Shown here: piece after piece, positions 14,884 to 30,508 of the stretch
How positions within the stretch are numbered: position 1 is the first letter of the stretch
Layout of the letters: each line of letters starts with the position of its first letter
Sequence record: LT603033.1
Length of the DNA stretch: 64,000 nucleotides
Strand: one strand, 5' to 3'
The notes under the pieces: generated by a model
What the model saw: the letters and a program-made list of their open reading frames with translations, nothing else
What the model was told of the DNA's origin: nothing
Databases searched by the model: none
Made by a program: the position numbers and the translations under genes

Positions 14884-14911
14884 TTGACATTATGATTCAG
14901 TACTGTATAAT
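14884..14911 (+). promoter_or_regulatory. sigma70 promoter with no downstream ORF
   Basis: TTGACA-16 nt-TATAAT. Confidence 0.75.
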
Positions 14912-14917
14912 GTTCTA

Positions 14918-15215: not shown

Positions 15216-15308
15216 TTCAAAAGATAGATCTATGGTATAGTACTGACGGATTTTGGGTGTAGTTACCCTGGATGGATTTTGGGCGTAGATATGTCTAGCC
15301 CTCCAGAA

Positions 15309-15434
15309 GTCTGGAAGTAAAGATGGCTATCCATCTAGACGGCTAAACGGCTAGATTTCTGGATGGCTGGATGGCTAGACGTTTGGACGGCTAAACGGCT
15401 AGATGGTTACACGTCTGGAAGTATAGACGGCTAA
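15309..15434. repeat. short direct-repeat cluster (YGGCTA units)
   Basis: About 8 YGGCT(A) units; GACGGCTAAACGGCTAGAT at 15338 and 15386; GTCTGGAAGTA at 15309 and 15413. Confidence 0.85.
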
Positions 15435-15589
15435 ATCAAAATTTTATTTTGTTTTTCCAATAGTTCCCCTACCGCGTGGGGATAGTTTCCCCGCAGTATC
15501 TGGAGTTAGATTTTTCTGAATCTGGAATCATTATCTTATAAACTGGGGGCAATGTCAACGACCTGGACGGATATTTTTAAAAATTTTTT

Positions 15590-15649
15590 CAGTACTGAAT
15601 TTTGGGCGTAACTATGCACCCGGTGGGCTTGAGTCTTTCTCGACTTGAT
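15590..15649 (-). ncRNA. candidate two-hairpin RNA/leader element, family R1
   Basis: Minus-strand TTGCTT-16-TATAAT promoter, AGTC-GAGAAA-GACT hairpin, AGCCCACCGGGTGC at 15616-15629. Confidence 0.5.
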
Positions 15650-15749
15650 GGAACTATTATACAGTACTGGAAAAATAAAGCAATACCCTGGATGAAAAAA
15701 GTTTTAATTAATTTGCTTGCCATCCTGGGCCGGACTATGGTACTATAAT

Positions 15750-15797
15750 TCAGTACTGAGAAAGTGCGTTAACCTGCTAGGGTGCGGGAGTGTATCC
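15750..15797 (+). ncRNA. candidate R1 element (degenerate)
   Basis: AACCTGCTAGGGTGCGGGAGTGTATC at 15771; tail matches the 17766 copy. Confidence 0.4.
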
Positions 15798-16060
15798 TTT
15801 TTTTATATCTTGAATTTTGGACGGATCTTCCCACCCCCTGGGGTATCCGCTTTCTCGCGTCTATGTAGTAATTATACGCTTTTTCAGGATCAAGTCAATA
15901 CCTAAAAACAAAATAATTGAAAATAATTTAACGCGTTTAAACGGCCCGTAAAGCCCTGGAATGATTGGAATGGTGCAAATGTATAGCTTGGGTGTATTAA
16001 TGCGTTAGAATGCGTCTGAGGCCGTTTTACGGGGTGTAGTAGTGATTTGGTGGATTGATT

Positions 16061-16200
16061 CAGTACTGAATAATAGTACTCCTATATAGAAAGATAGTTC
16101 CCCTGGATGGTTGCAGTACTGAATAATAGTACTCCTATATAGAAAGATAGTTCCCCTGGATGGTTGCAGTACTGAATAATAGTTCCCCTATATAGAAAGA
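16061..16200. repeat. 53-bp tandem repeat, about 2.6 copies
   Basis: Unit CAGTACTGAATAATAGTACTCCTATATAGAAAGATAGTTCCCCTGGATGGTTG at 16061 and 16114, partial at 16167. Confidence 0.95.
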
Positions 16201-16231
16201 AAACTATTTTAAAAGTATTTGTAGAAAGTAC

Positions 16232-16259
16232 TTGCAAACTATGTTTAACGGCGTATAAT
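16232..16259 (+). promoter_or_regulatory. first early-type sigma70 promoter
   Basis: AAAGTAC-TTGCAA-16-TATAAT-GTTTTACAT; near-copies recur before 16771, 17453 and at about 17930. Confidence 0.8.
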
Positions 16260-16314
16260 GTTTTACATCGAGAGCGGGAACACTTCCCGCTACATATTAC
16301 GAGAGATTAAAACG

Positions 16315-16677
16315 ATGGCGACTCAAATCACTAAAATTATTGCTAACCTGGTTAACTTTCGCGACGAGATGAAAGATCTTCCGGCAGAAACGGTAAAAAT
16401 TCACATTGCAGCTTATCGGGAACTTATTGCAATGTTACCTCTTAAGCGTGAACAATACGCCGCTACCGTGATGCTTGATGCGATGATCCATAAGATGATC
16501 GCCAGTGATTTAACGATGGTTTATCAGTATATGGGCGAAAATTTCGCGGTGTATAGTAAACCAGTACCAGGAATGGAAAGTACAGAAGTATTACACGGTT
16601 TAAATTTAAAACAAGATGCATGGGATAATATGCCTCGTTTCCTGGTATGGGCTGACAGTGGCAAAATTTACGAATAA
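16315..16677 (+). CDS. hypothetical early protein
   Basis: Start trimmed to MATQITK after promoter, hairpin and GAGAG RBS. Confidence 0.75.
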   Translation: MATQITKIIANLVNFRDEMKDLPAETVKIHIAAYRELIAMLPLKREQYAATVMLDAMIHKMIASDLTMVYQYMGENFAVYSKPVPGMESTEVLHGLNLKQDAWDNMPRFLVWADSGKIYE

Positions 16678-16770
16678 GTTTAATAAAGTACTTGCAAACT
16701 ATGTTTAATGGCGTATAATGTTTTACATCAGGTGGGGAATAGTTCCCCACTATATAAGAGGATTAAAAAA

Positions 16771-17010
16771 ATGGCTAAATCAAAAATGTTCTTAGGTCAC
16801 AAAAACAAAACTCATTGGAATGTAAGCCTTTGGATTAATAACGATGAATCATTATACCGGTTGGCCCTGGACTTTATTGCCGCCAATACTAATCGCAATG
16901 ATGCGGCCCGTCATATGATGTTATTTTTAGAACAGACTGGACAAGATAAAACACCGGACGGATTCAAATATAGCACTACTGCGATCCGTGCGGCAATGGT
17001 TGGAATGTAA
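16771..17010 (+). CDS. conserved phage hypothetical protein (HWNVSLWINNDE motif)
   Basis: GAGGA RBS; motif recognisable from many phage early proteins; function unknown. Confidence 0.75.
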   Translation: MAKSKMFLGHKNKTHWNVSLWINNDESLYRLALDFIAANTNRNDAARHMMLFLEQTGQDKTPDGFKYSTTAIRAAMVGM

Positions 17011-17098
17011 TAGAATAGAATTTATTTAAAGTACTATTGCACGGGGATAGTACTTTATAATAGTGTTTTATTCATACACCAACGATAAGGGCAACAGC

Positions 17099-17365
17099 AT
17101 GAATATTAAGTATTTTGCGACGCGTGAACAAGCTCGGATCGCCGCACGCCAGGACGGGGCAACGTTTAAAGATATGGGCGTACAATCGGAACGTGGTAAA
17201 CGTTGGGCCATTGTAAAGCGTAGTACCGCCAGATCATTACAGTACTGGTTAGCGGCCTTAAAAAGACCCGATAGTGTATCGCGACGAGTGGTAGAAATAA
17301 AGCTCGACCGAAAGGGCAACCGCGTGACCGTGTACCGTACTAAAAAGATTGCAGTACTTGAATAA
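17099..17365 (+). CDS. hypothetical early protein, paralog of 28556-28951
   Basis: Shared ATRE-AR-AR-G-FKDMG, RWA and DRKGNRVTVY. Confidence 0.75.
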   Translation: MNIKYFATREQARIAARQDGATFKDMGVQSERGKRWAIVKRSTARSLQYWLAALKRPDSVSRRVVEIKLDRKGNRVTVYRTKKIAVLE

Positions 17366-17452
17366 AAAGTACTTGCAAACTATGTTTAAAGGCGTATAAT
17401 GTTTTACATCGAGAGCGGGAACTCTTCCCGCCTATAACCTGGAGTAATAAAA

Positions 17453-17683
17453 ATGACTAATATGTATATGACTGAAGTTAAAACCGTAAAAGATACTACC
17501 ACGAATAAAACTACTTACTTACAGCGGATCTGTGGTGTATGGCAACGTATCAGCAAATCAAAGTACTTTAAATTAACATCATATGCAAACCGTTCGGATT
17601 CATTCAGTACTGAAATAAAAGGTAATAAAGTACACCAATACGGCACTTATTATTATTATAGCCTGGACGCGATTGCAGTATAA
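17453..17683 (+). CDS. hypothetical early protein
   Basis: GGAG RBS, own promoter and leader hairpin. Confidence 0.75.
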   Translation: MTNMYMTEVKTVKDTTTNKTTYLQRICGVWQRISKSKYFKLTSYANRSDSFSTEIKGNKVHQYGTYYYYSLDAIAV

Positions 17684-17748
17684 GCAGTTTACAAATCTTT
17701 ACAATTGCCGGTATTGACTTATTTTGTCAGTACTGGCATAATGTATTC

Positions 17749-17795
17749 ATTGGCAGATAAGCCGTAGCCCATAGGGTGCGGGAGTGTATCTATAG
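17749..17795 (+). ncRNA. candidate R1 element
   Basis: TTGACT-17-CATAAT promoter; GGC-AGATAA-GCC hairpin; AGCCCATAGGGTGC at 17766-17779. Confidence 0.5.
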
Positions 17796-17804
17796 AAAAA
17801 GTAG

Positions 17805-17851
17805 TTTATTACAGTTACAATTGTGCACCCGGTGGGTTAGCTGTTGTCATG
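17805..17851 (-). ncRNA. candidate R1 element, convergent with the 17749 copy
   Basis: Minus-strand TTGACA-17-CATAAT; AACCCACCGGGTGC at 17825-17838. Confidence 0.5.
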
Positions 17852-17965
17852 GGGTATATTATGCCAGTACTGGATAGTGCTGTCAATACCTTTTTACTAT
17901 TCAGTACTGAAAACTATTTTTAAAAAGTACTTGCAAACTATGTTTAAAGGCGTATAATGTTTTAC

Positions 17966-18040
17966 ATCAGGACGGGGAACGAAATAAGTAACTCCCCATT
18001 AAGTAGCCCAGGAGTAAGGCACACGAAAAACTCCCCTGAT
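17966..18040 (+). ncRNA. candidate structured RNA, family R2
   Basis: ATCAGG/CCTGAT closing stem, GGGGA/TCCCC and GGAGT/ACTCC hairpins; promoter upstream, next promoter directly downstream. Confidence 0.55.
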
Positions 18041-18108
18041 AAAATAGTTTGAAAATTGTTTTTAAAAGCGTATAATACTTACATCAACTACTGAATGAGG
18101 GTTACAAA

Positions 18109-18720
18109 ATGAAAACTATCACTACTACTACTTTCGTTATGGATTTTTCTGAATTGAACGCAGAACAAAAAACGTCAGCTATCGAACTGGTTCGGGAACG
18201 TGAAAAAAACTCAAACGACAATTATTTTTCTGAAAGTGAAATTGAATACTATAAAGAAACAGTACTACCGGAATATGGCATTAATGACGCTGAAATACAA
18301 TTCAGTGGTTTTTGGTCCCAGGGTGACGGTGCATCAATCAGTACTGACCACGTTGACGCAGTGAAGTTTTTACGCAAGGTAAGAGCATTAACTAAGTATC
18401 GCTCAATCCGTCACCTGCTGAATGAAGATGATTTGGCGATGAGTGTAAAGCGTTCTCACTCTCACTACTCGCATGAGAACACTGTAAGCGGGTACATTGA
18501 ATCGGCTTACACTGATTTAACCGCAAAACAAGAAACGTTAGTTAATGAGCTTGAGGAACTACTCACTGAAACTATTCGTGAATTGTCACGCAAGTTGTAC
18601 CGTGATTTAGAGAATGCATATGAGGATCAATTCACTACTGAAAACATCGTAGCACTGATTGAGGGTAACGAGTATCAATTCAATGTTATTGATGGCGTAG
18701 TAGAATCAATCGAATATTAA
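18109..18720 (+). CDS. acidic phage protein with FSGFWSQGDGAS motif
   Basis: 203 aa; motif recalled from a phage family often auto-annotated as antitoxin; function unverified. Confidence 0.7.
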   Translation: MKTITTTTFVMDFSELNAEQKTSAIELVREREKNSNDNYFSESEIEYYKETVLPEYGINDAEIQFSGFWSQGDGASISTDHVDAVKFLRKVRALTKYRSIRHLLNEDDLAMSVKRSHSHYSHENTVSGYIESAYTDLTAKQETLVNELEELLTETIRELSRKLYRDLENAYEDQFTTENIVALIEGNEYQFNVIDGVVESIEY

Positions 18721-18812
18721 TTCAAAAAGTACTGGACACTAAGCAATAAAGGCGTATAATACTTTATATCGAGAGCGGGAATAGTTCCCGCTACTAATGA
18801 GGAATACTACAA

Positions 18813-18977
18813 ATGAATACTTTTACCTTCGCTCAATTGAACGCCCTGGATGTATTGTCTGATGCTTTGCGGGATGCAACTGAAAGCGGTTTATTTGACA
18901 ATGTTGACATTCACCCTGATGTAATTAATAATTTTTGTGATGCTATCGCAGAAGTACTGGAAGATCTAAAAAAATAA
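18813..18977 (+). CDS. small acidic hypothetical protein (54 aa)
   Basis: GAGGA RBS, own promoter and hairpin; not in track. Confidence 0.65.
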   Translation: MNTFTFAQLNALDVLSDALRDATESGLFDNVDIHPDVINNFCDAIAEVLEDLKK

Positions 18978-18987
18978 TAGAAAGTAC

Positions 18988-19015
18988 TTGCAATTAGTTT
19001 TTAGTACTGTATAAT
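18988..19015 (+). promoter_or_regulatory. early sigma70 promoter
   Basis: TTGCAA-16-TATAAT with AGTACT in the spacer. Confidence 0.8.
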
Positions 19016-19065
19016 AGTTTACATAGAGGGGAGAAATGGTTCTCCCTGGTAATGAGGAAAATAAA

Positions 19066-19287
19066 ATGGCTAATATCACTACTCTTTCTCAACTGGAAGC
19101 ACTGGTTAAATCTATGCGGGAACATGCAGACAATATCGGCGTAAAAGATCCAGCCGTTTGCTTCTGCGACGAAATGAATGATGATACACTGGTAATAGCA
19201 GAAGTACAAGATATTTCTAACTATTCATCGCGTTACACTGGCGGCGTAGCAAATAAAGGTGACTTCTGTTTATACCTTACCAAATAA
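19066..19287 (+). CDS. hypothetical early protein
   Basis: Start trimmed to MANITTL; GAGGA RBS. Confidence 0.75.
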   Translation: MANITTLSQLEALVKSMREHADNIGVKDPAVCFCDEMNDDTLVIAEVQDISNYSSRYTGGVANKGDFCLYLTK

Positions 19288-19334
19288 CAACGCGGGGAGA
19301 TAATAACTCCCCGTTACTTTTTCAGTACTGAATC

Positions 19335-19387
19335 ATTTAATAGACGGATCTCGGCACCCTGTGGGTTAGTGACTGTATCGTCTTTAT
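19335..19387 (-). ncRNA. candidate R1 element (antisense)
   Basis: Minus-strand TTGACA-17-CATAAT; GAC-GATACA-GTC hairpin; AACCCACAGGGTGC at 19354-19367. Confidence 0.5.
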
Positions 19388-19529
19388 GTAGTAATTATGC
19401 CAGTACTGGATGCACTTGTCAACAACTATTTTTCAAATACTTTTTATTAAAATACTTGCTAATAGTTTTTAAACGCGTATAATGTTTTGCATAGGGGAGC
19501 GGTTCCCCTGGTAACTAAGGAATAAGAAA

Positions 19530-19766
19530 ATGCTTGAACAAATCAAATCAACGTCTGCTAATGTAACGGGAACGGTATCACACTTTATTGGTGATGAATC
19601 GCGGGGCGTTCCCTATTGTGCTGTACATGTAAACACTGAGGGTAACTACTGGTTTACGGTTTACGGATCATATTCATTTGGACGGCCAGGGCATCAAAAA
19701 ATTCTGGATAAAGTACAACCAACGGGTAAAAATATCACTGCCGAAATGTTTTATAAAAAATCATAA
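19530..19766 (+). CDS. hypothetical early protein
   Basis: AAGGA RBS, promoter, hairpin. Confidence 0.75.
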   Translation: MLEQIKSTSANVTGTVSHFIGDESRGVPYCAVHVNTEGNYWFTVYGSYSFGRPGHQKILDKVQPTGKNITAEMFYKKS

Positions 19767-19850
19767 AGTACTTGATAATAGTTTTTAGTACTGTACAATA
19801 TTTTACATCGCACGGGGGAGCGGTTCCCCCTGGTAACTAAGGATAATCAA

Positions 19851-20150
19851 ATGAAAATTGCAATCATCGCCCTGGCTTTATCTGTTTCCTCTTTCGCTGT
19901 TAACGCGTCGTTAGATGTACCTAGTGAAAAATTCATTCAGTGTACTGTTGCGATGACAGATGAAAGTACTGGCGAGATTGTTTTAAAGGATTTAGAGATC
20001 CAGTCAGAAGCATTTAAAAGCGGCCCGTTCCATGAAGAAGACGAAAAAGGTAGCACGACAATTTATTACGATGTAAGTACTAAGCGTGGATCGGTCACGG
20101 TTATGGATACTGAGAAAGTAACGCACACCGGAGTAATTAACTGTTTATAA
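19851..20150 (+). CDS. putative exported protein
   Basis: Sec-type signal MKIAIIALALSVSSFAVNA; acidic mature part with 2 Cys. Confidence 0.7.
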   Translation: MKIAIIALALSVSSFAVNASLDVPSEKFIQCTVAMTDESTGEIVLKDLEIQSEAFKSGPFHEEDEKGSTTIYYDVSTKRGSVTVMDTEKVTHTGVINCL

Positions 20151-20167
20151 TATAGTACTGAATCACT

Positions 20168-20195
20168 AGCCCACCTTAAACAGTGGGCTTTTTTG
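20168..20195 (+). terminator. Rho-independent terminator
   Basis: AGCCCAC-CTTAAACA-GTGGGCT-TTTTT; identical copy at about 20894. Confidence 0.8.
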
Positions 20196-20273
20196 TTTTG
20201 TAGTACTGCATACTTTAAAAATAGTTTTAAAAAAGTAGTTGACATTACCACAAAAAGGCGTAGAATGTATTAC

Positions 20274-20335
20274 ATCAAGACGGGGAGCACTAAGTAGACC
20301 GCCAGTAAGTCGAACGAAAAACTGGACACGTCGAT
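20274..20335 (+). ncRNA. candidate R2 structured RNA (short variant)
   Basis: Same TAAGTAG linker and 14-nt AAGNCRNANGAAAA loop, closed by CCAGT/ACTGG; promoter TTGACA-16-TAGAAT at 20239-20266. Confidence 0.45.
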
Positions 20336-20389
20336 AAAACTTTGATACACTAATAAACGTAAACTAAACTTTAATTGAGGATTTATAAA

Positions 20390-20872
20390 ATGGCTAATGT
20401 AAAATCATTCCTGAAAGCACTGATTTCAAACGATACTGTTATTGCTGCTGAATTGCTGGCTGAACTGGATAACGATACAATGAAAGCGGTACGCAACAAT
20501 TTTAACATTGCGTACAGTGAAGCTAAAGAACTGCAAGCCAAAAAGGTAGCAGAACTGGAAGAACAGAAAAAAGCCCGTGAAGCAGAACTACAAGCAACAA
20601 TTGAAAGTATTCAGGCGGCAGTGTCTGGATTGGATCTGGAAGTGGTTGTAGAAATGGCACATAAAGCCCTGGCGGTTAAGTACGGTGAAGATAAGCCGGA
20701 ATCTAAACCTAAAAAATGGATTCAAGAACGTGTTACTGTAGTACTTGATAACGGTGAAGAACATTTGATTCCTGTACGCGGTAACTGCATTGCGGTAGTA
20801 CTGGACGCTATCAAAGAAAGCGGTATGACTCGCGAGGAATGGATCGAAGCTCATCGCAAAGTTGAAGCATAA
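20390..20872 (+). CDS. H-NS-like nucleoid protein
   Basis: Coiled-coil N-half; C-terminus VVLDNGEEHLIPVRGNCIAVVLDAIKESGMTREEWI aligns by eye with E. coli H-NS [36 protein letters not shown]. Confidence 0.6.
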   Translation: MANVKSFLKALISNDTVIAAELLAELDNDTMKAVRNNFNIAYSEAKELQAKKVAELEEQKKAREAELQATIESIQAAVSGLDLEVVVEMAHKALAVKYGEDKPESKPKKWIQERVTVVLDNGEEHLIPVRGNCIAVVLDAIKESGMTREEWIEAHRKVEA

Positions 20873-20893
20873 CAATTAAAGTACTGAATCAAT

Positions 20894-20920
20894 AGCCCAC
20901 CTTAAACAGTGGGCTTTTTT
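20894..20920 (+). terminator. Rho-independent terminator
   Basis: AGCCCAC-CTTAAACA-GTGGGCT-TTTTT. Confidence 0.8.
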
Positions 20921-21156
20921 GTGTCTATAGTATTCCAGTCCACTAGCACCGCCTAGAATCGATTCTAACGCATTAAACTGATTATCTGATACATCGCCCT
21001 AGCTGGTGGCGTTAAGGTCGTTAGAAAGCGATTGAGAGTGTTTAAAGTATTTTGCAAAAAGTAATAAAAAGTACTTGCATGATTAAGAGATTAGCGTATA
21101 ATGTTTTACATCGAAAGGGGAAACGGTTCTCCTTCCAAATCAAAGGAATCAAAACA

Positions 21157-21384
21157 ATGGCTATTATCATTACTCGCGTATCTGGTACTACTGGCAATTC
21201 TTCTACTGTTGCAGTCATTACTAACAAGGCAGGTGCGGAATTGCAAAATGCAATGAATACCTGGGCCGTTAATGAGTTCGGTCAGTGGGCAAGTGTAGCA
21301 TACATTGAAACCTATCAAGTGCCGACCATTAGTTTAACGGATCTTGGTGTGGAACGTATCCTTTGCTTGGATGAATTAAATTAA
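21157..21384 (+). CDS. hypothetical early protein
   Basis: Start trimmed to MAIIITR; AAGGA RBS. Confidence 0.75.
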   Translation: MAIIITRVSGTTGNSSTVAVITNKAGAELQNAMNTWAVNEFGQWASVAYIETYQVPTISLTDLGVERILCLDELN

Positions 21385-21469
21385 AAAAGTACTTGCAAAG
21401 TAAATCGAATAAAGTATAATACATTACATCAAGGGGAGAAATGATTCTCCCCACTACAAGGAAACTAAT

Positions 21470-21613
21470 ATGAAAACTTGTCAATGTGGTAAAAAATCTA
21501 TTACTGGTTTAAAGCGGGGCGTTGCTCTTTGCCAGTACCATTATAATTTACAAGTATGGGGTAAAGAATGGGCCGACCAGGTGGAAGCAATTAAGAAAGC
21601 AAAAAGTAAGTAA
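21470..21613 (+). CDS. small Cys/His (putative Zn-binding) protein, 47 aa
   Basis: CQC...CQYH; own promoter TTGCAA-16-TATAAT at 21393-21420. Confidence 0.6.
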   Translation: MKTCQCGKKSITGLKRGVALCQYHYNLQVWGKEWADQVEAIKKAKSK

Positions 21614-21702
21614 AAATATTATCACAGTACTATTGACATAGTTTGATAGTACTGGCATAATAGATTTTATCAAGACAACATATTAATTTAAGGAATACTA
21701 AA

Positions 21703-22026
21703 ATGGCTAAAACTATCATTAACACCGTTTCCCTGGCTGCAATCCGTGCAATCAATGTTGACGGTAAACGTTGGACTGATTCATATGGCAATACTTATCA
21801 TTCTTGTCATGTAAGCGTCGAACTGGATAACGGTTTGAATGTTCTGGCGGTTGAATCATTTACTTATGGCTATGAAGATGCATATCAACAAACGGCGTTA
21901 GATCTATTAAAGGAATCAGTAGACGGGCTTAATACTGATGAAACCTCCCTTACTCGTTTGTGCAATGATCTTAATATCCCGTTGCATTGTACTGTACAGA
22001 ATGTTAAACGCAAAAAAGATCTTTAA
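21703..22026 (+). CDS. hypothetical early protein, paralog of 28137-28460
   Basis: Shared RWTDSxGNTYHSC and FTYGY motifs, ends VKRKKD. Confidence 0.8.
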   Translation: MAKTIINTVSLAAIRAINVDGKRWTDSYGNTYHSCHVSVELDNGLNVLAVESFTYGYEDAYQQTALDLLKESVDGLNTDETSLTRLCNDLNIPLHCTVQNVKRKKDL

Positions 22027-22106
22027 TTAGCTTTACTTTATGCAGATACTTTGATATAGTGTCTGCATAGGGGAAAGAAATTAAATTAACTTAAGAGGAT
22101 CGTATA

Positions 22107-22376
22107 ATGAAAAATATCAGTACTTTAATCGATGCAGGTACACATGTTCGGCGGTCTATGGTTGCAACCAGTACTACAAAACAAGTAGCAAGCGGTTATC
22201 TTGTATTTGTGCACGATGGTAAACTCCTGGAACGTTCAATCAATTTTGATGTTAAAAACAATTGCCGTTTTATTATCTTTAAGCGTGAACAATATAAAAT
22301 TGATTTGCCAGCGAAGCCCATTAGCGGGGCGTACAACGTGCAATCATTGTTTGAGCGTCAACCATACACCTATTGA
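22107..22376 (+). CDS. hypothetical early protein
   Basis: GAGGA RBS. Confidence 0.7.
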   Translation: MKNISTLIDAGTHVRRSMVATSTTKQVASGYLVFVHDGKLLERSINFDVKNNCRFIIFKREQYKIDLPAKPISGAYNVQSLFERQPYTY

Positions 22377-22427
22377 TCAAATCATCGTTAGTGGTCGATT
22401 TAGGCCGCTTATATTGGGGATTATACC

Positions 22428-22700
22428 ATGAACGTTAATCAAGTACTAAATGAAGTTGAAAGCATCATTAAACCAATGAAACGTATTGATGCAATGCTAA
22501 CACCGGAAGAATGCCGCCTTTATGAGCGTTACAGCGTCGAACAAGTCCAGGCGATGGCTATGGCTACCCCTGCCGTTAAACAGCCTGAGAATGCGTTACA
22601 GGACGTTACAGGGGATTATATCATTAATCCAGTACTAGGGAAGATTACACCAATCACCGAAGAAGAAAAAGACTACTTAAGCCAGTACTTAAAAGGTTAA
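22428..22700 (+). CDS. hypothetical protein
   Basis: GGGGA RBS. Confidence 0.65.
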   Translation: MNVNQVLNEVESIIKPMKRIDAMLTPEECRLYERYSVEQVQAMAMATPAVKQPENALQDVTGDYIINPVLGKITPITEEEKDYLSQYLKG

Positions 22701-22705
22701 TTAAT

Positions 22706-22915
22706 ATGCTTACTGTACAGGATAAGATCGACATCTTAAAGGTTAATATGTATGTGATTGATGCAGATCCTGAAAAAGTATTTGCATACGATGATTCTAA
22801 TCGTAGTCCTTTTTATTGTAGTCATGTAGTTGGATACGTGCCGTTAGCGTATGTTATCGAAAGAGTGGTTGATTCAGCATACAAACATTTTTTAGAAAAT
22901 AATACTTGCAATTAG
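22706..22915 (+). CDS. hypothetical protein
   Basis: Follows the previous gene closely. Confidence 0.65.
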   Translation: MLTVQDKIDILKVNMYVIDADPEKVFAYDDSNRSPFYCSHVVGYVPLAYVIERVVDSAYKHFLENNTCN

Positions 22916-22984
22916 TTTTTAGTACTGTATAATAGTTTACATGAAGTGGAGAAATAGTTCTCCCCACTAATTAAGGAATATGAA

Positions 22985-23131
22985 ATGAAAGCATCAAAAA
23001 AGAGTACTAATAAGAAAGCACGTTCAACTTTAGATGGGGTATTCCCTTTGCGTTTTGTGGATGAAGTGGTTTCCTACCCGCTGGGGCTTACTCCTGAGAT
23101 GGTAGAAAGTTTACGTAAATCTAAAAAATAA
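22985..23131 (+). CDS. small basic hypothetical protein (48 aa)
   Basis: Own promoter, hairpin and AAGGA RBS. Confidence 0.55.
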   Translation: MKASKKSTNKKARSTLDGVFPLRFVDEVVSYPLGLTPEMVESLRKSKK

Positions 23132-23212
23132 TACTTGCAATTAGTTTTTAGTACTGTATAATAGTTTACATGAAGGGGAGAAATGATTCTCCCCAAGAAC
23201 AGGAGAAATAAA

Positions 23213-23365
23213 ATGAAACAATATAATGCTCGGTTTGATGTTACTATCGGTAACGGTAAAGGTCAATTTTCTTTCAGTACTCGACGCAGTTATACAGAAA
23301 ACTTCCTGCGTAATTGTGCACTGACCGCCGCTCAAATTAAACATTATTTTCAGGCTAAAAAATGA
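23213..23365 (+). CDS. small hypothetical protein
   Basis: Start trimmed to MKQYNARF; AGGAG RBS. Confidence 0.65.
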   Translation: MKQYNARFDVTIGNGKGQFSFSTRRSYTENFLRNCALTAAQIKHYFQAKK

Positions 23366-23451
23366 AATCATTAGCTTATTACAGTTCGGCCCTGGTCGTT
23401 GCATTGATCGCGGCGTTGTTAGTAACCTATCTATTCTTTATGGTGATTTAA
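23362..23451 (+). CDS. small membrane peptide (29 aa)
   Basis: ATGA overlap; SSALVVALIAALLVTYLFFMVI. Confidence 0.45.
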   Translation: MKSLAYYSSALVVALIAALLVTYLFFMVI

Positions 23452-23589
23452 ATGAATCCTAACGGTATAATTTACAGTACTCCTAAAACGAAAGCAGACA
23501 AGGTAAACGCTAAAAAAGCGAAAGTAAAGGAGTACATCAAGCAAGGCATGACGCGAAAGGCGGCGATTCTAAAAGCTAAAAATAAATGA
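23452..23589 (+). CDS. small Lys-rich protein (45 aa)
   Basis: Adjacent to the upstream stop; KTKADKVNAKKAKVKEYIKQG. Confidence 0.5.
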   Translation: MNPNGIIYSTPKTKADKVNAKKAKVKEYIKQGMTRKAAILKAKNK

Positions 23590-23591
23590 AA

Positions 23592-23627
23592 AAAGTGGTT
23601 GACTTCGGTCAGCCATTTTGCTATTAT
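23592..23627 (+). promoter_or_regulatory. composite terminator hairpin / promoter
   Basis: AAAAGTGGTTGAC-TTCG-GTCAGCCATTTT hairpin contains -35 TTGACT, then 17 nt to TATTAT. Confidence 0.7.
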
Positions 23628-23633
23628 ATATTC

Positions 23634-23682
23634 ATTGAGAGATAGCTCACTAGCCCACAGGGTGCAGGAGTGTATCTATTGT
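23634..23682 (+). ncRNA. candidate R1 element
   Basis: TGAG-AGATAG-CTCA hairpin; AGCCCACAGGGTGC at 23652-23665. Confidence 0.5.
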
Positions 23683-23800
23683 ATAATGTTTGAGTACTGA
23701 AAACTATTTTTAAAAAAGTACTTGAAAACTATCTCAATTGGCGTATAATGTTTTACATCGCAAGGGGAAACGGTTTCCCCTGGTAATAAGGAAACGAATC

Positions 23801-24142
23801 ATGACTATCTCAATTGCTCAATCTAACTTTGAAAATGAAATCATCGCCCAGGTACTGCGTTTAAATGATGGTCGGGCCGAAATTAATTACGGTTTCAATT
23901 CAGGCGGTTGTGAAAACTATCAGTACTTTGTAACGGCTGATGGCGGTGTCCTGGGCATCAATACAGTTATTGTAAACATCCAAAAAATTAATTTCAATGA
24001 TCCAGACGATAGCCAGTTTTACATCACTGGCGTAGACGTGAACTATGAGGATGACTCACTAACTGATGATTACACTGGTGAGCGGTTAGAAAGTGCTTAT
24101 GGTGAAGATGATTATCAGTCAGTACCGGAAGATTTCGAATAA
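23801..24142 (+). CDS. acidic hypothetical early protein
   Basis: Start trimmed to MTISIAQ; D/E-rich C-terminus. Confidence 0.75.
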   Translation: MTISIAQSNFENEIIAQVLRLNDGRAEINYGFNSGGCENYQYFVTADGGVLGINTVIVNIQKINFNDPDDSQFYITGVDVNYEDDSLTDDYTGERLESAYGEDDYQSVPEDFE

Positions 24143-24234
24143 TATAAAAAATAGTTTGACAATAGATTATAGTACTGTATAATAGTTTACATCAAGGGGA
24201 GAATAGTTCTCCCCACTAACAGAGAAAAAACAAA

Positions 24235-24447
24235 ATGGCTAATATCCGCACTGTACTGAAAAATGCAAAACAAGTTTTATTTTCTGATCATGATACTTTC
24301 AACAAGGATATTACTGGCGTTCGGAATATCAAAGATGTAAAAAGTGTTATGGGTATCTATTGCAATATGAAACGTGTTGGAACGTTCGGCGACAAAGTAC
24401 TATACCAGGCAGGGGATTACAATTTTACACTGACTATCATTAACTAA
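24235..24447 (+). CDS. hypothetical early protein
   Basis: Promoter TTGACA-16-TATAAT at 24156-24183, hairpin. Confidence 0.75.
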   Translation: MANIRTVLKNAKQVLFSDHDTFNKDITGVRNIKDVKSVMGIYCNMKRVGTFGDKVLYQAGDYNFTLTIIN

Positions 24448-24530
24448 AAATATTATCACAGTACTATTGACATAGTTTGATAGTACTGACATAATAAGTT
24501 TTATCAACTACACTACTAAGGAATTAAAAA

Positions 24531-24710
24531 ATGGCTATCATCGCAAAAACTGAAATCATCGGCCTGGATTCTATCATCATGACGTTTGAAGATCAAAAAG
24601 GTATGTATGTGGTTTCCTATGGTGATTATGTTCGGGAGTATGAAACGGTAGACGAAGCCTTTGAAAGTTACATTCGCCAGGTGAATAAAGCATACGACGA
24701 CTACCGCTAA
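24531..24710 (+). CDS. small acidic hypothetical protein (59 aa)
   Basis: AAGGA RBS, own promoter; not in track. Confidence 0.65.
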   Translation: MAIIAKTEIIGLDSIIMTFEDQKGMYVVSYGDYVREYETVDEAFESYIRQVNKAYDDYR

Positions 24711-24809
24711 AATATATTACCAGTACTATTAAAGATATTGACAACGTTTGATAGTACTGTATAATAAGTTTTATCAACAGTAGTTAACTTAACCTAAGAG
24801 AGAAACAAA

Positions 24810-24953
24810 ATGATCGCACTGGATTCATTCATCGACGCAGTACTGGCAAAAACTGGCGAGGATCTGACCGCAGAACAATACGCAATGATCGAGCAATGCC
24901 AGCAAGACGGTAAATCGGTGAAAGATACTGTTAAGATTATCCGCAAGATGTAA
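24810..24953 (+). CDS. small hypothetical protein (47 aa)
   Basis: GAGAG RBS, own promoter, terminator at about 24960-24988. Confidence 0.6.
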   Translation: MIALDSFIDAVLAKTGEDLTAEQYAMIEQCQQDGKSVKDTVKIIRKM

Positions 24954-25058
24954 GATTATAGCCCACTGGTTAACGCTGGTGGGCTTTAATTCATTACCCT
25001 ATACAATGCCAGTACTAAACCGTTTATCTCCTTAGAATGCGTTACAGGACGTTTGACA

Positions 25059-25256
25059 ATGATTAGCATGAAATCAGTACAAAAACAAATAGAAACATTA
25101 TCAAAAATTAAACGTAAACAGTACTCGTTAGAATATACAATCAATGGTAACTATCATCTAATGAAAGAGAATAATTTCATTGTCATTGATGAATCATTGC
25201 AAATCATTAGTATAGTACTGAAAGCATTAATCAATGACAGAAAAAAATTAAAATAA
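25059..25256 (+). CDS. hypothetical protein
   Basis: ORF with AGGA upstream. Confidence 0.55.
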   Translation: MISMKSVQKQIETLSKIKRKQYSLEYTINGNYHLMKENNFIVIDESLQIISIVLKALINDRKKLK

Positions 25257-25295
25257 TATATTGACAATATCCTCCAGTACTGGCATAATACTTAC

Positions 25296-25345
25296 ATCAA
25301 GACGAGAACGTCACTAACCCATAGGGTGCACAAATGTAACTGTAT
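25296..25345 (+). ncRNA. candidate R1 element
   Basis: TTGACA-17-CATAAT at 25261-25289; GACG-AGAA-CGTC hairpin; AACCCATAGGGTGC at 25316-25329. Confidence 0.5.
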
Positions 25346-25587
25346 AATATTGATCAAAAAATGATCTGATCAATACTTGATCAATTTGCGTAAAGTAGTA
25401 TAATTCTATGCAGTTGGTTAGACGAAAGGTTATGATTAGTAGTGCAAGTGTATAAAAATTTTCATGGTGTATCGTTTCGCACATATGGGGATGAATATGT
25501 GGTATCATGTGGATTGGAAAAAGTAAGAACAAGTAATATTATTGTCGCATTACAGTACTATAGTATTTTTATAATGAGGTTAAAATA

Positions 25588-25845
25588 ATGGCTGTAGGAT
25601 TCGCGAAAGATGGGGCCGAACAAGACGAGATTAACGCAGTGATTCAGGCCGCCGTTAACCACGCTAGAAAGCAAATTAACGCACAAATAGAATCACTGAT
25701 ACATTGCCTCGACTGCGGCGATATAATCCCTGAGAAACGACGCCAGGCCGTTAAGGGGTGTAAGTACTGCATAACTTGCCAGGAGGATCATGATAGTACT
25801 TTTAAACGTCCCCCGCGTAATTGTTGGCATAGATCTATGAGATAA
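25588..25845 (+). CDS. DksA/TraR-family C4 zinc-finger protein (YbiI-like)
   Basis: MAVGFAKDGAEQDEI...CLDCGDIIPEKRRQAVKGCKYCITCQ: canonical TraR/YbiI pattern. Confidence 0.9.
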   Translation: MAVGFAKDGAEQDEINAVIQAAVNHARKQINAQIESLIHCLDCGDIIPEKRRQAVKGCKYCITCQEDHDSTFKRPPRNCWHRSMR

Positions 25846-25920
25846 AAAGTATTGACAGTACTATCCAGTAGTGTTATAGTACTTACATCAAGGGGAAACA
25901 TCTTCCCCTACTAAGAGGAA

Positions 25921-26115
25921 ATGAAAATGGAAAACTTATCAAGTATTTTAGTACAAGATGATTTCGGTAATCCTGGAAGTGCTATCATTGTTCGGGGTAA
26001 TAAAGCAACATTTGTTATTGCTGGTGGACCTGTACAGCGTAGCATTAAAAATAATGCTGTTACCATTAATAATGTACGCTATCGCTTAGATAAAGAATTG
26101 ATTCATAAACTGTAA
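25921..26115 (+). CDS. hypothetical early protein
   Basis: Promoter at 25852-25880, hairpin, GAGGA RBS. Confidence 0.7.
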   Translation: MKMENLSSILVQDDFGNPGSAIIVRGNKATFVIAGGPVQRSIKNNAVTINNVRYRLDKELIHKL

Positions 26116-26142
26116 TATTAATTTAATAGAGGATAACAATAA

Positions 26143-26466
26143 ATGTACATTCATACTACTATCACAAAGGAAGTCCGTTGCCAGTTCGAAAGTATTCCGG
26201 GCGTATGTTTCATCACTGGTACGTTTTCCCCTGGTGATCGTGATAATCCAGTACTGTTACAATTACGCCATCCATCATGGGATAAAGCATTTGATCTACC
26301 GTTGAATGAATTCGCAACTACTGCTGAAAAGTACATTAAAAATATTCGCGAGAATGATCGACTATTCATTAATGCTTTTAGTGATTCCGCGTTAAGCGAG
26401 ATCCACGGCGTATTGGTTGCAATCATGGAATCAATGGAGAAAACTAAATTCAAACAAGGTGAATAA
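26143..26466 (+). CDS. hypothetical protein
   Basis: GAGGA RBS. Confidence 0.75.
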   Translation: MYIHTTITKEVRCQFESIPGVCFITGTFSPGDRDNPVLLQLRHPSWDKAFDLPLNEFATTAEKYIKNIRENDRLFINAFSDSALSEIHGVLVAIMESMEKTKFKQGE

Positions 26467-26549
26467 AAACTATTGACAAGATAATCTAGTACTGTATAAT
26501 AAGTTACATGAAGGGGAGAAATGATTCTCCCCACTAAGAGGAAAGAAAA

Positions 26550-26762
26550 ATGCAAGGTCAACTAATCGTTCGTAAATGGTCTGATACTAACGAAAAACCG
26601 TGGGATGTACAATACATCGGACCGGATGGGGTATCACGTTATCAGCCAGGCGTAACGCATAGTACTGAGCAATATGCCGCCGCTCACCGCGAACGCCTGT
26701 TAGAATCCATGAAACAGGGATTCTGTGAAAAATTCATTCAAGATCATTGGCTGAAAGATTAA
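26550..26762 (+). CDS. hypothetical early protein
   Basis: Promoter TTGACA-16-TATAAT at 26473-26500. Confidence 0.75.
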   Translation: MQGQLIVRKWSDTNEKPWDVQYIGPDGVSRYQPGVTHSTEQYAAAHRERLLESMKQGFCEKFIQDHWLKD

Positions 26763-26779
26763 TAGAAGGAGTACAGCTT

Positions 26780-26872
26780 ATGCAAATGAATCCGATGATT
26801 ATTGTTTTAGCTGTACTTATGATCATTCATGCAATAGTAGAAGTATTAACGCAATCAGGAGTAATAAAATGA
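26780..26872 (+). CDS. small membrane peptide (30 aa)
   Basis: AAGGAG RBS; hydrophobic core. Confidence 0.45.
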   Translation: MQMNPMIIVLAVLMIIHAIVEVLTQSGVIK

Positions 26873-27042
26873 TTCAAGTAGAATTATCAGTACTAAAAGA
26901 TCTGTTTTATCGGATTGGTACTACTGGCGAATATCCGAAGGGTGATAATGCAAAACTTTACGTATCACTCGACTTATGGCAACGCGAACAATTAGCAACG
27001 GCCTGGCGTAAAGGCAAAGCAGATAGCGAGGTGAAAGCATGA
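26869..27042 (+). CDS. small hypothetical protein (57 aa)
   Basis: AGGAG RBS, ATGA overlap. Confidence 0.6.
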   Translation: MIQVELSVLKDLFYRIGTTGEYPKGDNAKLYVSLDLWQREQLATAWRKGKADSEVKA

Positions 27043-27188
27043 AAGAATTCTTATTTGAAGTAGTGTTTCAAGGTGTCGGTAATAACCAACTGATTCGCTC
27101 AAGTGGTTACAATGTTAACCAGGCATGGAATAACATTAAACAAATGTACCCGAACGCTATCACATATCGCAACCCGAAAGAAGTTTAA
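27039..27188 (+). CDS. small hypothetical protein (49 aa)
   Basis: GAGG RBS, ATGA overlap. Confidence 0.55.
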   Translation: MKEFLFEVVFQGVGNNQLIRSSGYNVNQAWNNIKQMYPNAITYRNPKEV

Positions 27189-27240
27189 AAATAATTGAAA
27201 AAGGGATTGACTCCGGTCAGTCCCTTTGCTATTATATACG

Positions 27241-27285
27241 CATAGAAACAAATCAGCCCACCGGGTGCATAAATGTATCTATTAT
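27241..27285 (+). ncRNA. candidate R1 element
   Basis: Composite hairpin/promoter AAAGGGATTGAC-TCCG-GTCAGTCCCTTT; AGCCCACCGGGTGC at 27255-27268. Confidence 0.5.
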
Positions 27286-27360
27286 ATGCTGGTGGCTAGT
27301 ACTGAAAACTATTTTTAAAAAGTACTTGCATTGTACTTAGAATCAAGTATAATGTTTTAC

Positions 27361-27433
27361 ATCAGGACGGGGAACGAAACAAGTAACCCCGTTAAGTAGT
27401 CCAGGAGTAAGACATAAGAAAACCTCCCCTGAT
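27361..27433 (+). ncRNA. candidate R2 structured RNA
   Basis: ATCAGG/CCTGAT, ACGGGG/CCCCGT and GGAG/CTCC stems; paralog of 17966-18040. Confidence 0.55.
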
Positions 27434-27502
27434 AAAATAGTTTGACAATAGAAAGTAAACGAGTATAATACTTACATCAACCACTGATAAGGAAACATAA
27501 AA

Positions 27503-27778
27503 ATGCGGATTCTACTGACAGCTAACGAAATCGAACAAGTACTGACTACTAACCTGGAAGACTGGAAACGTGAAGCAGATATCCAGGCGGTTCAACGGCT
27601 TAACGATGAGTTAACGCCGGATGACTTAAGCAAGATTGTAGATCCTCAATTCTACGAAGATATCCACGACACCGCGTTAAGCGTCGAGGATGTACTAGAT
27701 AAGCACTACATTGATATTGATTTGCAGGTTTACGGTCGTAAAAACTTTATCACTATTCACGACATTTACAATAATTAA
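27503..27778 (+). CDS. acidic hypothetical early protein
   Basis: AAGGA RBS; D/E-rich. Confidence 0.75.
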   Translation: MRILLTANEIEQVLTTNLEDWKREADIQAVQRLNDELTPDDLSKIVDPQFYEDIHDTALSVEDVLDKHYIDIDLQVYGRKNFITIHDIYNN

Positions 27779-29597: not shown

Positions 29598-29840
29598 ATG
29601 ATTACTTTAGAAAAACGTATCAAAGAAACTACATCGCTGGTGGAACTGTTAACAGTACTGAAATGCCGTACTACTCGGTTTAGTACACCGGACTTTATTA
29701 ATATGGTTGATGTTAACGGTCGTTATCGCATTGCAGTAGAACAAGGAACAGCGAAAGTATTCAGTACTAAAAACACTAAGGAAGTGATTCACGCTGTAAG
29801 TGTTAAAAAAGTAGTTGCCATTGATAGTAAAGTACTGTAA
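29598..29840 (+). CDS. hypothetical early protein
   Basis: Upstream region duplicates that of 29322. Confidence 0.7.
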   Translation: MITLEKRIKETTSLVELLTVLKCRTTRFSTPDFINMVDVNGRYRIAVEQGTAKVFSTKNTKEVIHAVSVKKVVAIDSKVL

Positions 29841-29871
29841 GATAGTTTCATTAACTCAAGGAGAACATGCA

Positions 29872-30456
29872 ATGCGTAATTATACTAAATTCATCCGTAC
29901 ACTGTCAGAAATGGAAACCAACAAAGAGATCCTTTCAGCTTGTCGGTTAGCTGGTCTGGAGATCATCGGTGCGGGTTCTTCCCGTATTGTATTCGCTTTA
30001 AATGATCGGTTAGTGATCAAGGTCGCGAATTGTGATGCGGGTGTAGAACAAAATGAAACTGAATGTAAGGTATGGAATTTTTTAGATTATGACCGCCCTC
30101 AATTGAAACAGTACTTTGCAAAGGTGCATATGCATTTATGCGATCCTGATAATATGTTTATCGTTATGGATCGGTTGAGTACTGCAAGTAAAGGCAGTGT
30201 GAAGCACGTTAACGCGTGCAACGAATTAAAGTACAATATTAAACGTAATGCCATTGAACGCCAGCACCGCTTTGCTGATGCACTACAACACGTCGATGAT
30301 ACATTATCAACACTAACGATAAGAGATATCAGAAAACAGAATATCGGCCAGGATCGTAATGGCCTTATTAAAGTACTTGATTACGGTTTAACCCGCAATA
30401 TCTGGAATCAGTACTATAAAAAGCGTGATGTAAAAGCCGTAACTATAACACGATAA
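29872..30456 (+). CDS. protein kinase-like protein (Ser/Thr type)
   Basis: Ordered motifs: IGAGSSRIVF (Gly loop), VIK, QNETE (alphaC Glu), RDIRKQN (catalytic D...N), DYG; AAGGAG RBS. Confidence 0.8.
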   Translation: MRNYTKFIRTLSEMETNKEILSACRLAGLEIIGAGSSRIVFALNDRLVIKVANCDAGVEQNETECKVWNFLDYDRPQLKQYFAKVHMHLCDPDNMFIVMDRLSTASKGSVKHVNACNELKYNIKRNAIERQHRFADALQHVDDTLSTLTIRDIRKQNIGQDRNGLIKVLDYGLTRNIWNQYYKKRDVKAVTITR

Positions 30457-30508
30457 AAAAGATTAAAAAAGGGATTGACTCCGGTCAGTCCCTTTGCTAA
30501 TATATATT

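Follow-up and report, generated by a model that had tools for sequence, protein, structure and literature searches.

In a 64,000-nt stretch of sequence record LT603033.1 (hereafter the window), one RNA element occurs three times on the + strand, at positions 17966-18040 (copy 1), 20274-20335 (copy 2), and 27361-27433 (copy 3). We conclude with high confidence that each copy is a structured, 5′-terminal domain (60-75 nt) of an early transcript synthesized by the host sigma-70 RNA polymerase, that its core is an H-type pseudoknot, that it is a homolog of the T7 A1 leader, and that it moves as a promoter-plus-leader module. An earlier interpretation made from the letters alone (the sequence-only reading) had proposed an RNA with covarying stems at these three places and had recognized neither the pseudoknot nor the kinship with the T7 A1 leader. 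The source of the window is an Asteriusvirus-type jumbo coliphage: over positions 17800-20500, identity was 100% with Escherichia phage vB_Eco_slurp01 and 84-98% with other Asteriusvirus genomes of ~350 kb, such as PBECO4 and 121Q.

The pattern shared by the copies, TAAGTAG..GTAAG....A.GAAAA, matched the window at 18000, 20291, and 27393 only, always on the + strand (3 matches observed versus 0.16 expected; 3 matches were reached in 0 of 100 shuffles). When a covariance model built on 23 family members was run over the 64 kb with filters off, exactly three copies were returned (53.1-53.6 bits, E ~4e-12), and the runner-up scored 8.6 bits. Both searches bear out the three locations first proposed.

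The pseudoknot core

The alignment of the core (A5) held 37 distinct sequences and 43 columns, 18 of which were invariant. The highest mutual information of the alignment (1.34 bits) was found between column 11, which follows UAAGUAG, and column 24, which follows the UAAG of the loop. This pair was Watson-Crick in all 37 sequences (A-U in 25, U-A in 6, C-G in 5, and G-C in 1), and the U-A and C-G types each occurred in separate phage lineages. Within the window, the pair is C-G in copy 1, A-U in copy 2, and U-A in copy 3. Because the N11-N24 pair makes a 3-bp stem (S1) together with the invariant G10-C25 and C12-G23, the core is an H-type pseudoknot. Thus, S1 consists of G-N-C paired with G-N′-C, and its 5′ strand overlaps the end of UAAGUAG. 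An inner C-G pair closing the tetraloop was dropped in favor of S1 once column 11 was found to covary with column 24. The fixed 14-nt loop of the sequence-only reading is indeed present, but it is not open: its G-N-C pairs with the G-N-C at the TAAGTAG end.

The second stem, P2 (4-5 bp, columns 14-18 with 36-40), encloses (N)UAA-GNC-NNNN-GAAAR-N and was seen in all three window copies. Its four inner pairs were paired in every sequence, and three of them varied on both sides (CG/GC/UA, UA/AU, and CG/GC), whereas the outermost pair was mostly G-U, G-C, or A-U, with a mismatch in some sequences; altogether, covariation was seen at three to four of the five pairs. The loops of the pseudoknot are L1 (1 nt), L2 ((N)UAA), and L3, an A-rich strand of 10 nt (NNNN-G-AAA-R-N). 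The junction UAAGUAG followed by N-C was present in all three copies and was invariant or nearly so in the 37 distinct members. Over the whole structure, 97.3% of cells were paired versus 16-41% in slid controls, and neither the observed pairing nor the observed covariation score was reached by any of 500 shuffles. The G-U pairs sit on the + strand, which identifies it as the transcribed strand. Single-sequence folding was weak alone (z-scores of -2.2, -2.3, and -0.6 for the three copies), so the structural case leans on the relatives.

All the stems listed in the sequence-only reading (GGAGT/ACTCC, GGAG/CTCC, CCAGT/ACTGG, ATCAGG/CCTGAT, GGGGA/TCCCC, and ACGGGG/CCCCGT) were found, and its view that the RNA is under selection for pairing was confirmed by covariation among the relatives. 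Homologs maintain the pairing, with the S1 pair kept in 37 of 37 and the inner P2 pairs kept always. The compensatory change that it had described for hairpin 1 between copies 1 and 3 is really a one-sided change combined with a register shift.

Closure of the domain

An outer helix is predicted to join the segment directly 3′ of P2 to an upstream segment. In the T7-like phages, the loop of an adjoining upstream hairpin (CCGG-GGUCAA-CCGG in T7) pairs with the 5-6 nt that follow P2, forming a second pseudoknot. Six complementary pairs were found there at one fixed position (GUCAA/UUGAC, GAUUAG/CUAAUC, GUCGGU/ACCGAC, GUCAUC/GAUGAC, GUGAA/UUCAC, and GCUAA/UUAGC), with double-sided changes in all five core pairs, a result matched by 0 of 500 shuffles. 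In the jumbo phage forms and those of the 140-146-kb myoviruses, the 3′ segment would pair with the 5′ end of the RNA or with GACGG (AUCAGG/CCUGAU, GACG/CGUC plus AUC/GAU, AUCAA/UUGAU, GACGG/CCGUC, and CGGC/GCCG or GUCG). A test on length only gave a mean of 5.5 bp, barely above the 4.4 bp of control windows, and a complementary pair was present in each window copy. Support for the outer helix comes from covariation in the T7-likes and not from the length test; in the jumbo phage and myovirus forms the helix is plausible and less well supported than in the T7-likes. Hairpin 1 of the long forms was kept, with little true covariation. RNAalifold mis-paired the core of the long forms owing to alignment noise.

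Occurrence in phage and bacterial sequences

The T7 homolog scored 62.8 bits with the covariance model and has the same UAAGUAG, S1, P2, and A-rich L3. Its core lies at nt 551-587 of T7 (element ~536-594), inside the A1 transcript (start 498), and reaches into the -35 of A2. The first transcribed bases are alike, AUCGAGAGGGAC... in T7 and AUCAGGACGGGGAAC... in the window. As in the window, the A1-A2 leader of T7, T3, K1F, KP32-like phages, and other Studiervirinae belongs to a host-polymerase early transcript with a strong promoter right behind the element. The outer closure differs, being the loop pseudoknot CCGG-GGUCAA-CCGG in T7-likes versus the RNA 5′ end in the window, and T7 has one copy versus three in the window.

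With copy 1 as query, blastn matched 45 phage records, which were Asteriusvirus and 137-147-kb myoviruses. Asteriusvirus genomes had matches at two places, or at four where the terminal repeat was written twice. Identity to copy 1 was 88-91% in outra, muut, and EmilieFrey, of which outra and muut are Justusliebigvirus; A7_1 (Vequintavirinae) and A73, W70, and A5-4, coliphages of similar size, were also matched. The search with copy 2 added the Erwinia jumbo phage Hallingskeid, vB_EcoM-LTH01 (Vequintavirinae), the Salmonella and Klebsiella jumbo phages Munch, 7t3, SE_PL, PHA46, and fENko-Kae01, and, unexpectedly, T7-like Yersinia phages (nt 553-587). A core of the T3 type matched at least 500 phage records, and 497 of the matches listed covered at least 80% of the query. 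Nearly all of those listed were Studiervirinae from Escherichia, Klebsiella, Salmonella, Yersinia, Enterobacter, Shigella, Citrobacter, and Serratia hosts, and most matches lay <1 kb from the left end in records starting at the physical end. The covariance model placed one copy each in T7, outra, Munch, Hallingskeid, LTH01, and Pantoea phage LIMEzero (Waewaevirus; 858-899), and nothing was found with it in HK022, T5, rV5, phi92, or T4.

A first, loose pattern scan of viral contigs gave mostly stemless chance matches and was followed by a pairing filter and then a stricter pattern. The strict pattern yielded 38 stretches in IMG/VR viral contigs, all from T7-like, LIMEzero-like, or jumbo phages, and 28 stretches in metagenome contigs, in phage-like contexts. 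The same pattern in 185,579 bacterial and archaeal genomes gave a single stretch, on a 2.7-kb T3-like contig. The Escherichia coli K-12 chromosome held no element (best score, 17 bits), and blastn with copy 2 found no match among 5,426 E. coli genomes. Because the element is shared by unrelated phages, almost all of them on Enterobacterales hosts, and bacterial genomes are without it, its binding partner is probably a host component.

The element was the most conserved part of the T7 early leader region. Among 45 distinct T7-like sequences, the majority-base frequency was 0.96 in the core and 0.97 in the 3′ strand of the outer helix, compared with 0.67 in the A1 promoter, 0.61 in the A2 spacer and -10, and 0.52 in the A2 leader. 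Rfam 15 gave no match, either for the window at the gathering threshold or for window positions 17900-20400 and T7 480-940 at E up to 10. We found no description of the motif in a literature search that yielded only papers printing T7 templates and in which older T7 papers are poorly covered, so that an early mention is possible; for these jumbo phages, promoters and terminal repeats have been described, but not the element. The T7 record carries no annotation at the element, and most matching records carry nothing or "hypothetical protein"; the refactored T7.1 record alone labels a "conserved -45 base of A2."

Position within early transcripts

In all three window copies, the element lies on the transcribed strand within ~100 nt 3′ of a sigma-70 early promoter. 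That each copy begins at the start of a strong promoter, as had been read from the letters, held true: 7-8 nt separate the -10 hexamer from the start of the element (TATAAT at 17953-17958 for copy 1, TAGAAT at 20261-20266 for copy 2, and TATAAT at 27348-27353 for copy 3, all on the + strand). Copies 1 and 3 also stop just short of the next promoter, as claimed, with 8 nt to its -35 (TTGAAA at 18049 and TTGACA at 27442, respectively); downstream of copy 2 there is only a weak, degenerate, overlapping match. Across lineages, a sigma-70-type promoter started 2-42 nt after P2 in 38 of 40 distinct contexts; one context had none, and that of copy 2 was weak. Where an upstream promoter was detectable, the end of its -10 was 24-61 nt 5′ of UAAGUAG. 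The paired transcription starts were separated by ~118 bp in the window and by 128 bp in T7, a spacing that would give room for about two adjacent polymerases.

No intrinsic terminator followed any element copy examined, in any lineage. In LIMEzero and in the related contigs L050 and L072, the order was a single promoter, the element, an rrn-type boxA, and a gene, with boxA 16-22 nt 3′ of the element in L050 and L072; this order is plainly a cis context. Because terminators are absent and the LIMEzero-like copy lies in a 5′ untranslated region, we regard the element as a leader domain and not as a stand-alone small RNA gene. Of the undescribed phage noncoding RNA proposed in the sequence-only reading, the structured RNA without an Rfam family or a description that we could find has therefore stood, whereas the discrete small RNA gene of 60-75 nt has not.

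In many T7-likes, a perfect boxA stood farther along the leader, 116-394 nt beyond the element, and in the KP32-like group boxA was not found within 450 nt. In T7 itself, a perfect rrn-type boxA (CGCUCUUUAACAAU) occupies 793-805 and is kept in many, not all, T7-like early leaders. In LIMEzero, a second UAAGUAG occurs at 900-906, directly after the outer helix and ahead of a boxA-like CGCUCUUUAUACAA. Four T7 RNA-seq runs, available as contigs only, each contained one contig across T7 380-1000, without visible starts, ends, or joints. The runs that contained the window region were DNA or wastewater metatranscriptomes, stored as contigs.

Organization of the window copies

Copy 1, a long form, occupies 17966-18040 on the + strand; its first base is the predicted transcription start, and its last is the 3′ end of the closing helix. 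Its upstream promoter (17931-17958) has a -35 TTGCAA, a 16-nt spacer, and the -10 TATAAT, with an A/T-rich UP-like tract in front. The 5′ strand of the outer helix, AUCAGG (17966-17971), would pair with CCUGAU at 18035-18040, and hairpin 1 (GGGGA/UCCCC, 17974-17997), a feature of long forms only, stands between this strand and the junction UAAGUAG (18000-18006), of which six of the seven positions were invariant in the 37 distinct members and the first U was kept in 36. The 5′ strand of S1, G-C-C (18006-18008), pairs with G-G-C at 18018-18020, which falls within what had been called the 14-nt loop; P2 is formed by GGAG (18011-18014) and CUCC (18031-18034). Between them, L3 (ACACGAAAAA, 18021-18030) is the A-rich strand that would cross S1. 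The downstream promoter (18049-18076) reads TTGAAA, a 16-nt spacer, and TATAAT.

Copy 2 (20274-20335, + strand) is a short form without hairpin 1, behind a promoter at 20239-20266 (TTGACA, 16-nt spacer, TAGAAT). Its junction is at 20291-20297, its S1 pairs G-A-C with G-U-C (20297-20299 with 20309-20311), and its P2 pairs CCAG with CUGG (20302-20305 with 20322-20325). The outer helix would be made of GACG (20279-20282) with CGUC (20329-20332) and AUC (20274-20276) with GAU (20333-20335). Copy 3 (27361-27433, + strand) is again a long form. Behind an upstream promoter at 27326-27353 (TTGCAT, 16-nt spacer, TATAAT), it shows a putative outer helix (27361-27366 with 27428-27433), hairpin 1 (ACGGGG at 27367-27372 with CCCCGU at 27387-27392), the junction (27393-27399), S1 (G-U-C with G-A-C, 27399-27401 with 27411-27413), and P2 (27404-27407 with 27424-27427). 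The promoter downstream of copy 3 (27442-27469; TTGACA, 16-nt spacer, TATAAT) matches the consensus at 12 of 12 positions.

Records that open at the physical terminus place both copy 1 and copy 2 within the long direct terminal repeat, at distances of ~3.4 and ~5.9 kb, respectively, from the left end. For these Rak2-like phages, terminal repeats of ~22 kb have been described, as have RpoD-like promoters accompanied by UP-like elements in what is presumed to be the early region (PMC5259590). Consensus sigma-70 promoters were dense on the + strand of the window between 12 and 30 kb, ahead of small genes. No tRNA and, at the Rfam gathering threshold, no Rfam family was found in the window.

The genes that follow the copies, all on the + strand, encode an acidic protein of 203 aa (18109-18720, phrog_5162; copy 1), a protein of 160 aa without a Pfam domain (20390-20872, phrog_27871; copy 2), and a very acidic protein of 91 aa (27503-27778, phrog_14947; copy 3). 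None of the three had an NCBIfam, PDB, or Pfam match, and their PHROG families are of unknown function; they are acidic, early, uncharacterized proteins. In Munch and Hallingskeid, as in the window, the short form is followed in synteny by a member of a single protein family (phrog_27871/20181). Otherwise, the gene behind the element varies by phage, and in outra it is a homolog of the window gene at 16771, which has a plain-hairpin leader in the window. The nearest relatives also differed among copies: copy 1 was closest to outra and muut (C-G pair and same loop), copy 3 to A7_1, and copy 2 to the short forms of LTH01, Hallingskeid, Munch, and EJP2.

The promoter and leader at 16692-16750 (+ strand) are related: this leader starts with ACAUCAGG, and it has only a 5′ hairpin (GGUGGGGAA/UUCCCCACU) and no pseudoknot. 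Because it starts alike yet has a plain hairpin, the element is a separable module. Identical 22-nt terminator hairpins stand upstream of the copy 2 cassette (20168-20189, + strand) and at its close (20894-20915, + strand), which suggests that the cassette of promoter, element, and gene moves, or is exchanged, by recombination between repeats. Judged from these arrangements, the promoter and its RNA element appear to behave as a mobile module among phages.

A second leader type was noted in the window at 16725-16750 and in the further sequences L120 (~2625-2650) and L123 (~2155-2175). It combines a TATAAT-ACTTACATCA promoter with a short GC hairpin before the ribosome-binding site (GGUGGGGAA-UAG-UUCCCCACU, GCGGGAACACUUCCCGC, and GGCGGGAAUAGUUCCCGAC) and is probably a 5′ stabilizer.

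Other repeats in the window

The palindrome TCAGTACTGA (searched as CAGTACTGA) gave 51 strand matches versus 0.58 expected. Its sites were mainly at 14300-19400, and others were at 7722, 9485, 29653-32900, 39551, and 52180-57130; they are concentrated around the inferred left end of the genome and shortly 5′ of early promoters, and the one at 17901-17910 is ~20 nt upstream of the -35 of the copy 1 promoter. A dimeric regulator of early transcription could bind at this palindrome. At 14314-14509, a 60-bp unit is repeated perfectly in tandem (3.3 copies), and further tandem arrays lie at 15334-15433 (53 bp × 2.6) and 16061-16200 (24/32/48 bp). Comparison with records that open at the physical terminus puts the expected left genome end near 14.55-14.6 kb, right after the 60-bp array. 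Beside these repeats, positions 14514-14540 hold CACUAAGUAG, after which comes a hairpin of another kind (GGCAGAGGAAGUCUGCC); of the covariance model, the junction part alone was matched (8.6 bits), and the match may be a relic or chance. Farther upstream, window positions 900-5900 contain five copies of a ~1.2-kb unit (spacings of 1220, 1211, 1180, and 1211 nt) that share a block of 68-120 nt with 69-81% identity to the reference copy. The region looks like tandem paralogous genes with a conserved control region.

Discussion

By analogy with known leaders, we tentatively favor a cis-acting element of the put or nut kind that works on the host elongation complex, although we give this reading somewhat less than an even chance. 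Its target would be the polymerase by which it has just been synthesized, or factors that travel with this enzyme. The RNA would fold on emergence from the RNA exit channel, possibly while the polymerase slows at the following strong promoter or boxA, and once folded it would bind either RNA polymerase itself or an elongation factor (NusA, S4, or the Nus complex, for example). Early transcription would then be more processive, with fewer pauses, less backtracking, and less Rho-dependent and intrinsic termination. We favor such cis action because the element has a fixed place at the head of the transcript, a strong promoter or boxA behind it, and a distribution over phages almost all recorded on a single host order, and because put offers a precedent.

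The put element of HK022 is a nascent leader RNA of ~65 nt that binds RNA polymerase and suppresses pausing and termination, and putL folds using a sigma-dependent pause (PMC8632103; PMC9378689). The two resemble each other as structured nascent RNAs behind strong early phage promoters, and put acts on the host polymerase without a phage protein. The pause to which putL is tied may be set beside the promoter or boxA that nearly always stands behind the element. However, put is a double hairpin without a pseudoknot, whereas the element is a pseudoknot, and their sequences do not match. A likeness to the rrn leader and lambda nut lies in the hairpin that adjoins boxA within a leader that is not translated. 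The rrnB leader of E. coli has a boxB with a 5-bp stem and a 14-nt A-rich loop, 1 nt before boxA, and its promoters P1 and P2 are ~120 bp apart; the LIMEzero-like element is upstream of a perfect or near-perfect boxA. This likeness is one of architecture only, without homology: the lambda boxB loop has 5 nt, and the window copies are without boxA.

Several observations weigh against cis action on elongation. The genes after copies 1 and 3 have a consensus promoter of their own, so a cis effect on those genes looks redundant. The element stands at only 3 of several dozen early promoters in the window, and no boxA (GCUCUUUAACAA-like) was found near the window copies, the seven two-mismatch matches in the window being expected by chance. 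Its spread among myoviruses is patchy, with outra and muut carrying it versus phi92 lacking it, and LTH01 and A7_1 carrying it versus rV5 lacking it; such a spread fits an accessory function, e.g., counter-defense, at least as well. No sequence or structural similarity to put was detected, and the model found nothing in HK022. To our knowledge, decades of in vitro T7 early transcription have brought no report of A1-specific termination resistance. It is possible, if rather doubtful, that the element represents a new class of phage RNA apart from put and nut, a compact double pseudoknot produced within seconds of infection that either reprograms host polymerase protein-free or serves as an aptamer against a conserved Enterobacterales factor or defense, on a cassette exchanged between T7-like podophages and large myoviruses.

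Action in trans is an unlikely but serious alternative. The 5′ domain would be cut out in the A/U-rich stretch after the outer helix, and the product, a decoy or natural aptamer, would accumulate during the first minutes and sequester a conserved host protein or defense component at a time when no phage protein has yet been made. A nested pseudoknot and a core with about 18 invariant positions among 43 columns look aptamer-like; a paired 5′ end and a helix-closed 3′ side should give a stable fragment; the ~30 nt after the element are A/U-rich and unstructured; and the element has its own strong promoter ahead of genes that already have one. The patchy, horizontal-looking spread in myoviruses agrees with this, as does the fact that RNase III severs the T7 A1 leader from the 0.3 mRNA, which also counts against a passive stabilizer. 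However, no terminator follows the element in the lineages examined, the LIMEzero-like copy is within an ordinary 5′ untranslated region before boxA, most phages have a single copy, and no known decoy family matches in Rfam. Hence, the protein decoy or antitoxin mimic suggested in the sequence-only reading is possible only as a processed product. Type III antitoxin RNAs, of which phages can carry mimics, are likewise small RNA pseudoknots of phage-host conflict, but ToxI consists of tandem 34-45-nt repeats beside a toxin gene and is processed by the toxin, whereas the window copies are single, 2.3 and 7.1 kb apart, with no tandem repeat at the sites and no Rfam match. The likenesses to the pistol ribozyme, the 16S 3′ region, and ToxI that we had presumed were not matched by any Rfam model. 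The least probable reading of all is a CsrA sponge of the CsrB type, to which we assign almost no weight. The likeness to CsrB/RsmZ would be that of small, structured, abundant RNAs, and copies 1 and 3 do contain CAGGACG and CAGGAG. Their GGA lies inside stems, copy 2 has CAAGACG and CGCCAGT instead, T7-like members carry CCUG/CAGG stems, and no GGA is invariant; the idea fails because the GGA motifs are not conserved. Moreover, the element is without loop GGA, repeated binding units, or a terminator, and no CsrB, CsrC, or Rsm match was obtained at the Rfam gathering threshold or at E up to 10.

An improbable alternative is a passive 5′ domain for stability or insulation that blocks 5′-end-dependent decay and keeps the leader from Rho loading or R-loops beside the next promoter. 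The 5′-terminal nucleotides are paired in the jumbo phage forms, a simple 5′ hairpin occupies the same place in the 16692 leader, and the single strands are rich in A and G and poor in C, the reverse of the composition of a Rho loading site. It leaves unexplained, however, the invariant single-stranded nucleotides and a pseudoknot shared across families where a plain hairpin suffices elsewhere in the window, and in T7 another 5′ stem precedes the element, which begins at about +39. Both ligand-sensing aptamers (riboswitch-like) and small self-cleaving ribozymes typically contain nested pseudoknots in which many unpaired nucleotides are invariant, and the A-rich L3 could make a minor-groove triplex with S1. 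Nevertheless, an early-leader riboswitch or ribozyme is very improbable: there is no expression platform (no terminator, and a Shine-Dalgarno sequence out of reach in most lineages), no Rfam model matched even at E up to 10, and we know of no report of self-cleavage although T7 A1 run-off transcripts have been on gels for decades. A feature of the DNA (an UP-element, tandem-promoter spacer, or recombination repeat, with incidental RNA structure) has been largely refuted by covariation and retains only a slight chance. It would account for the A-tract of T7 at about -41 to -45 of A2, for the identity of the outer-helix 3′ strand with the A2 -35 hexamer, for tandem promoters ~118-128 bp apart in the window and T7, and for the identical terminators flanking the copy 2 cassette. 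Because three helices show compensatory changes and G-U pairs occur on one strand only, selection has acted on the RNA. In addition, the next -35 stands at a variable 2-42 nt, the promoter is missing in some lineages, and even where the outer-helix partner is no -35 hexamer, it changes in step with the loop upstream.

As a mobile unit, the element invites comparison with the PeSL cassettes of T4-type phages, repeated units of an early promoter and a stem-loop that lie on either side of small early genes where the genome is plastic. The copy 2 cassette between identical terminators and the occurrence of the module before different genes in different phages are PeSL-like. Yet what defines a PeSL cassette is its promoter and terminator repeats, and a conserved pseudoknot in the transcript is no part of that definition.

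The T7 A1 transcript is among the RNAs most used in transcription biochemistry, and its most conserved segment, above even the A1 and A2 promoters, seems to have neither a name nor an Rfam family nor an assigned role. The same fold in jumbo phages, 140-146-kb myoviruses, and LIMEzero-like phages, invariably at the head of host-polymerase early transcripts, suggests a general, portable answer to a problem that each of these phages meets in the first minute of infection. The answer may serve to keep early transcription processive, perhaps in connection with DNA entry, or it may be a countermeasure against the host that consists of RNA only.

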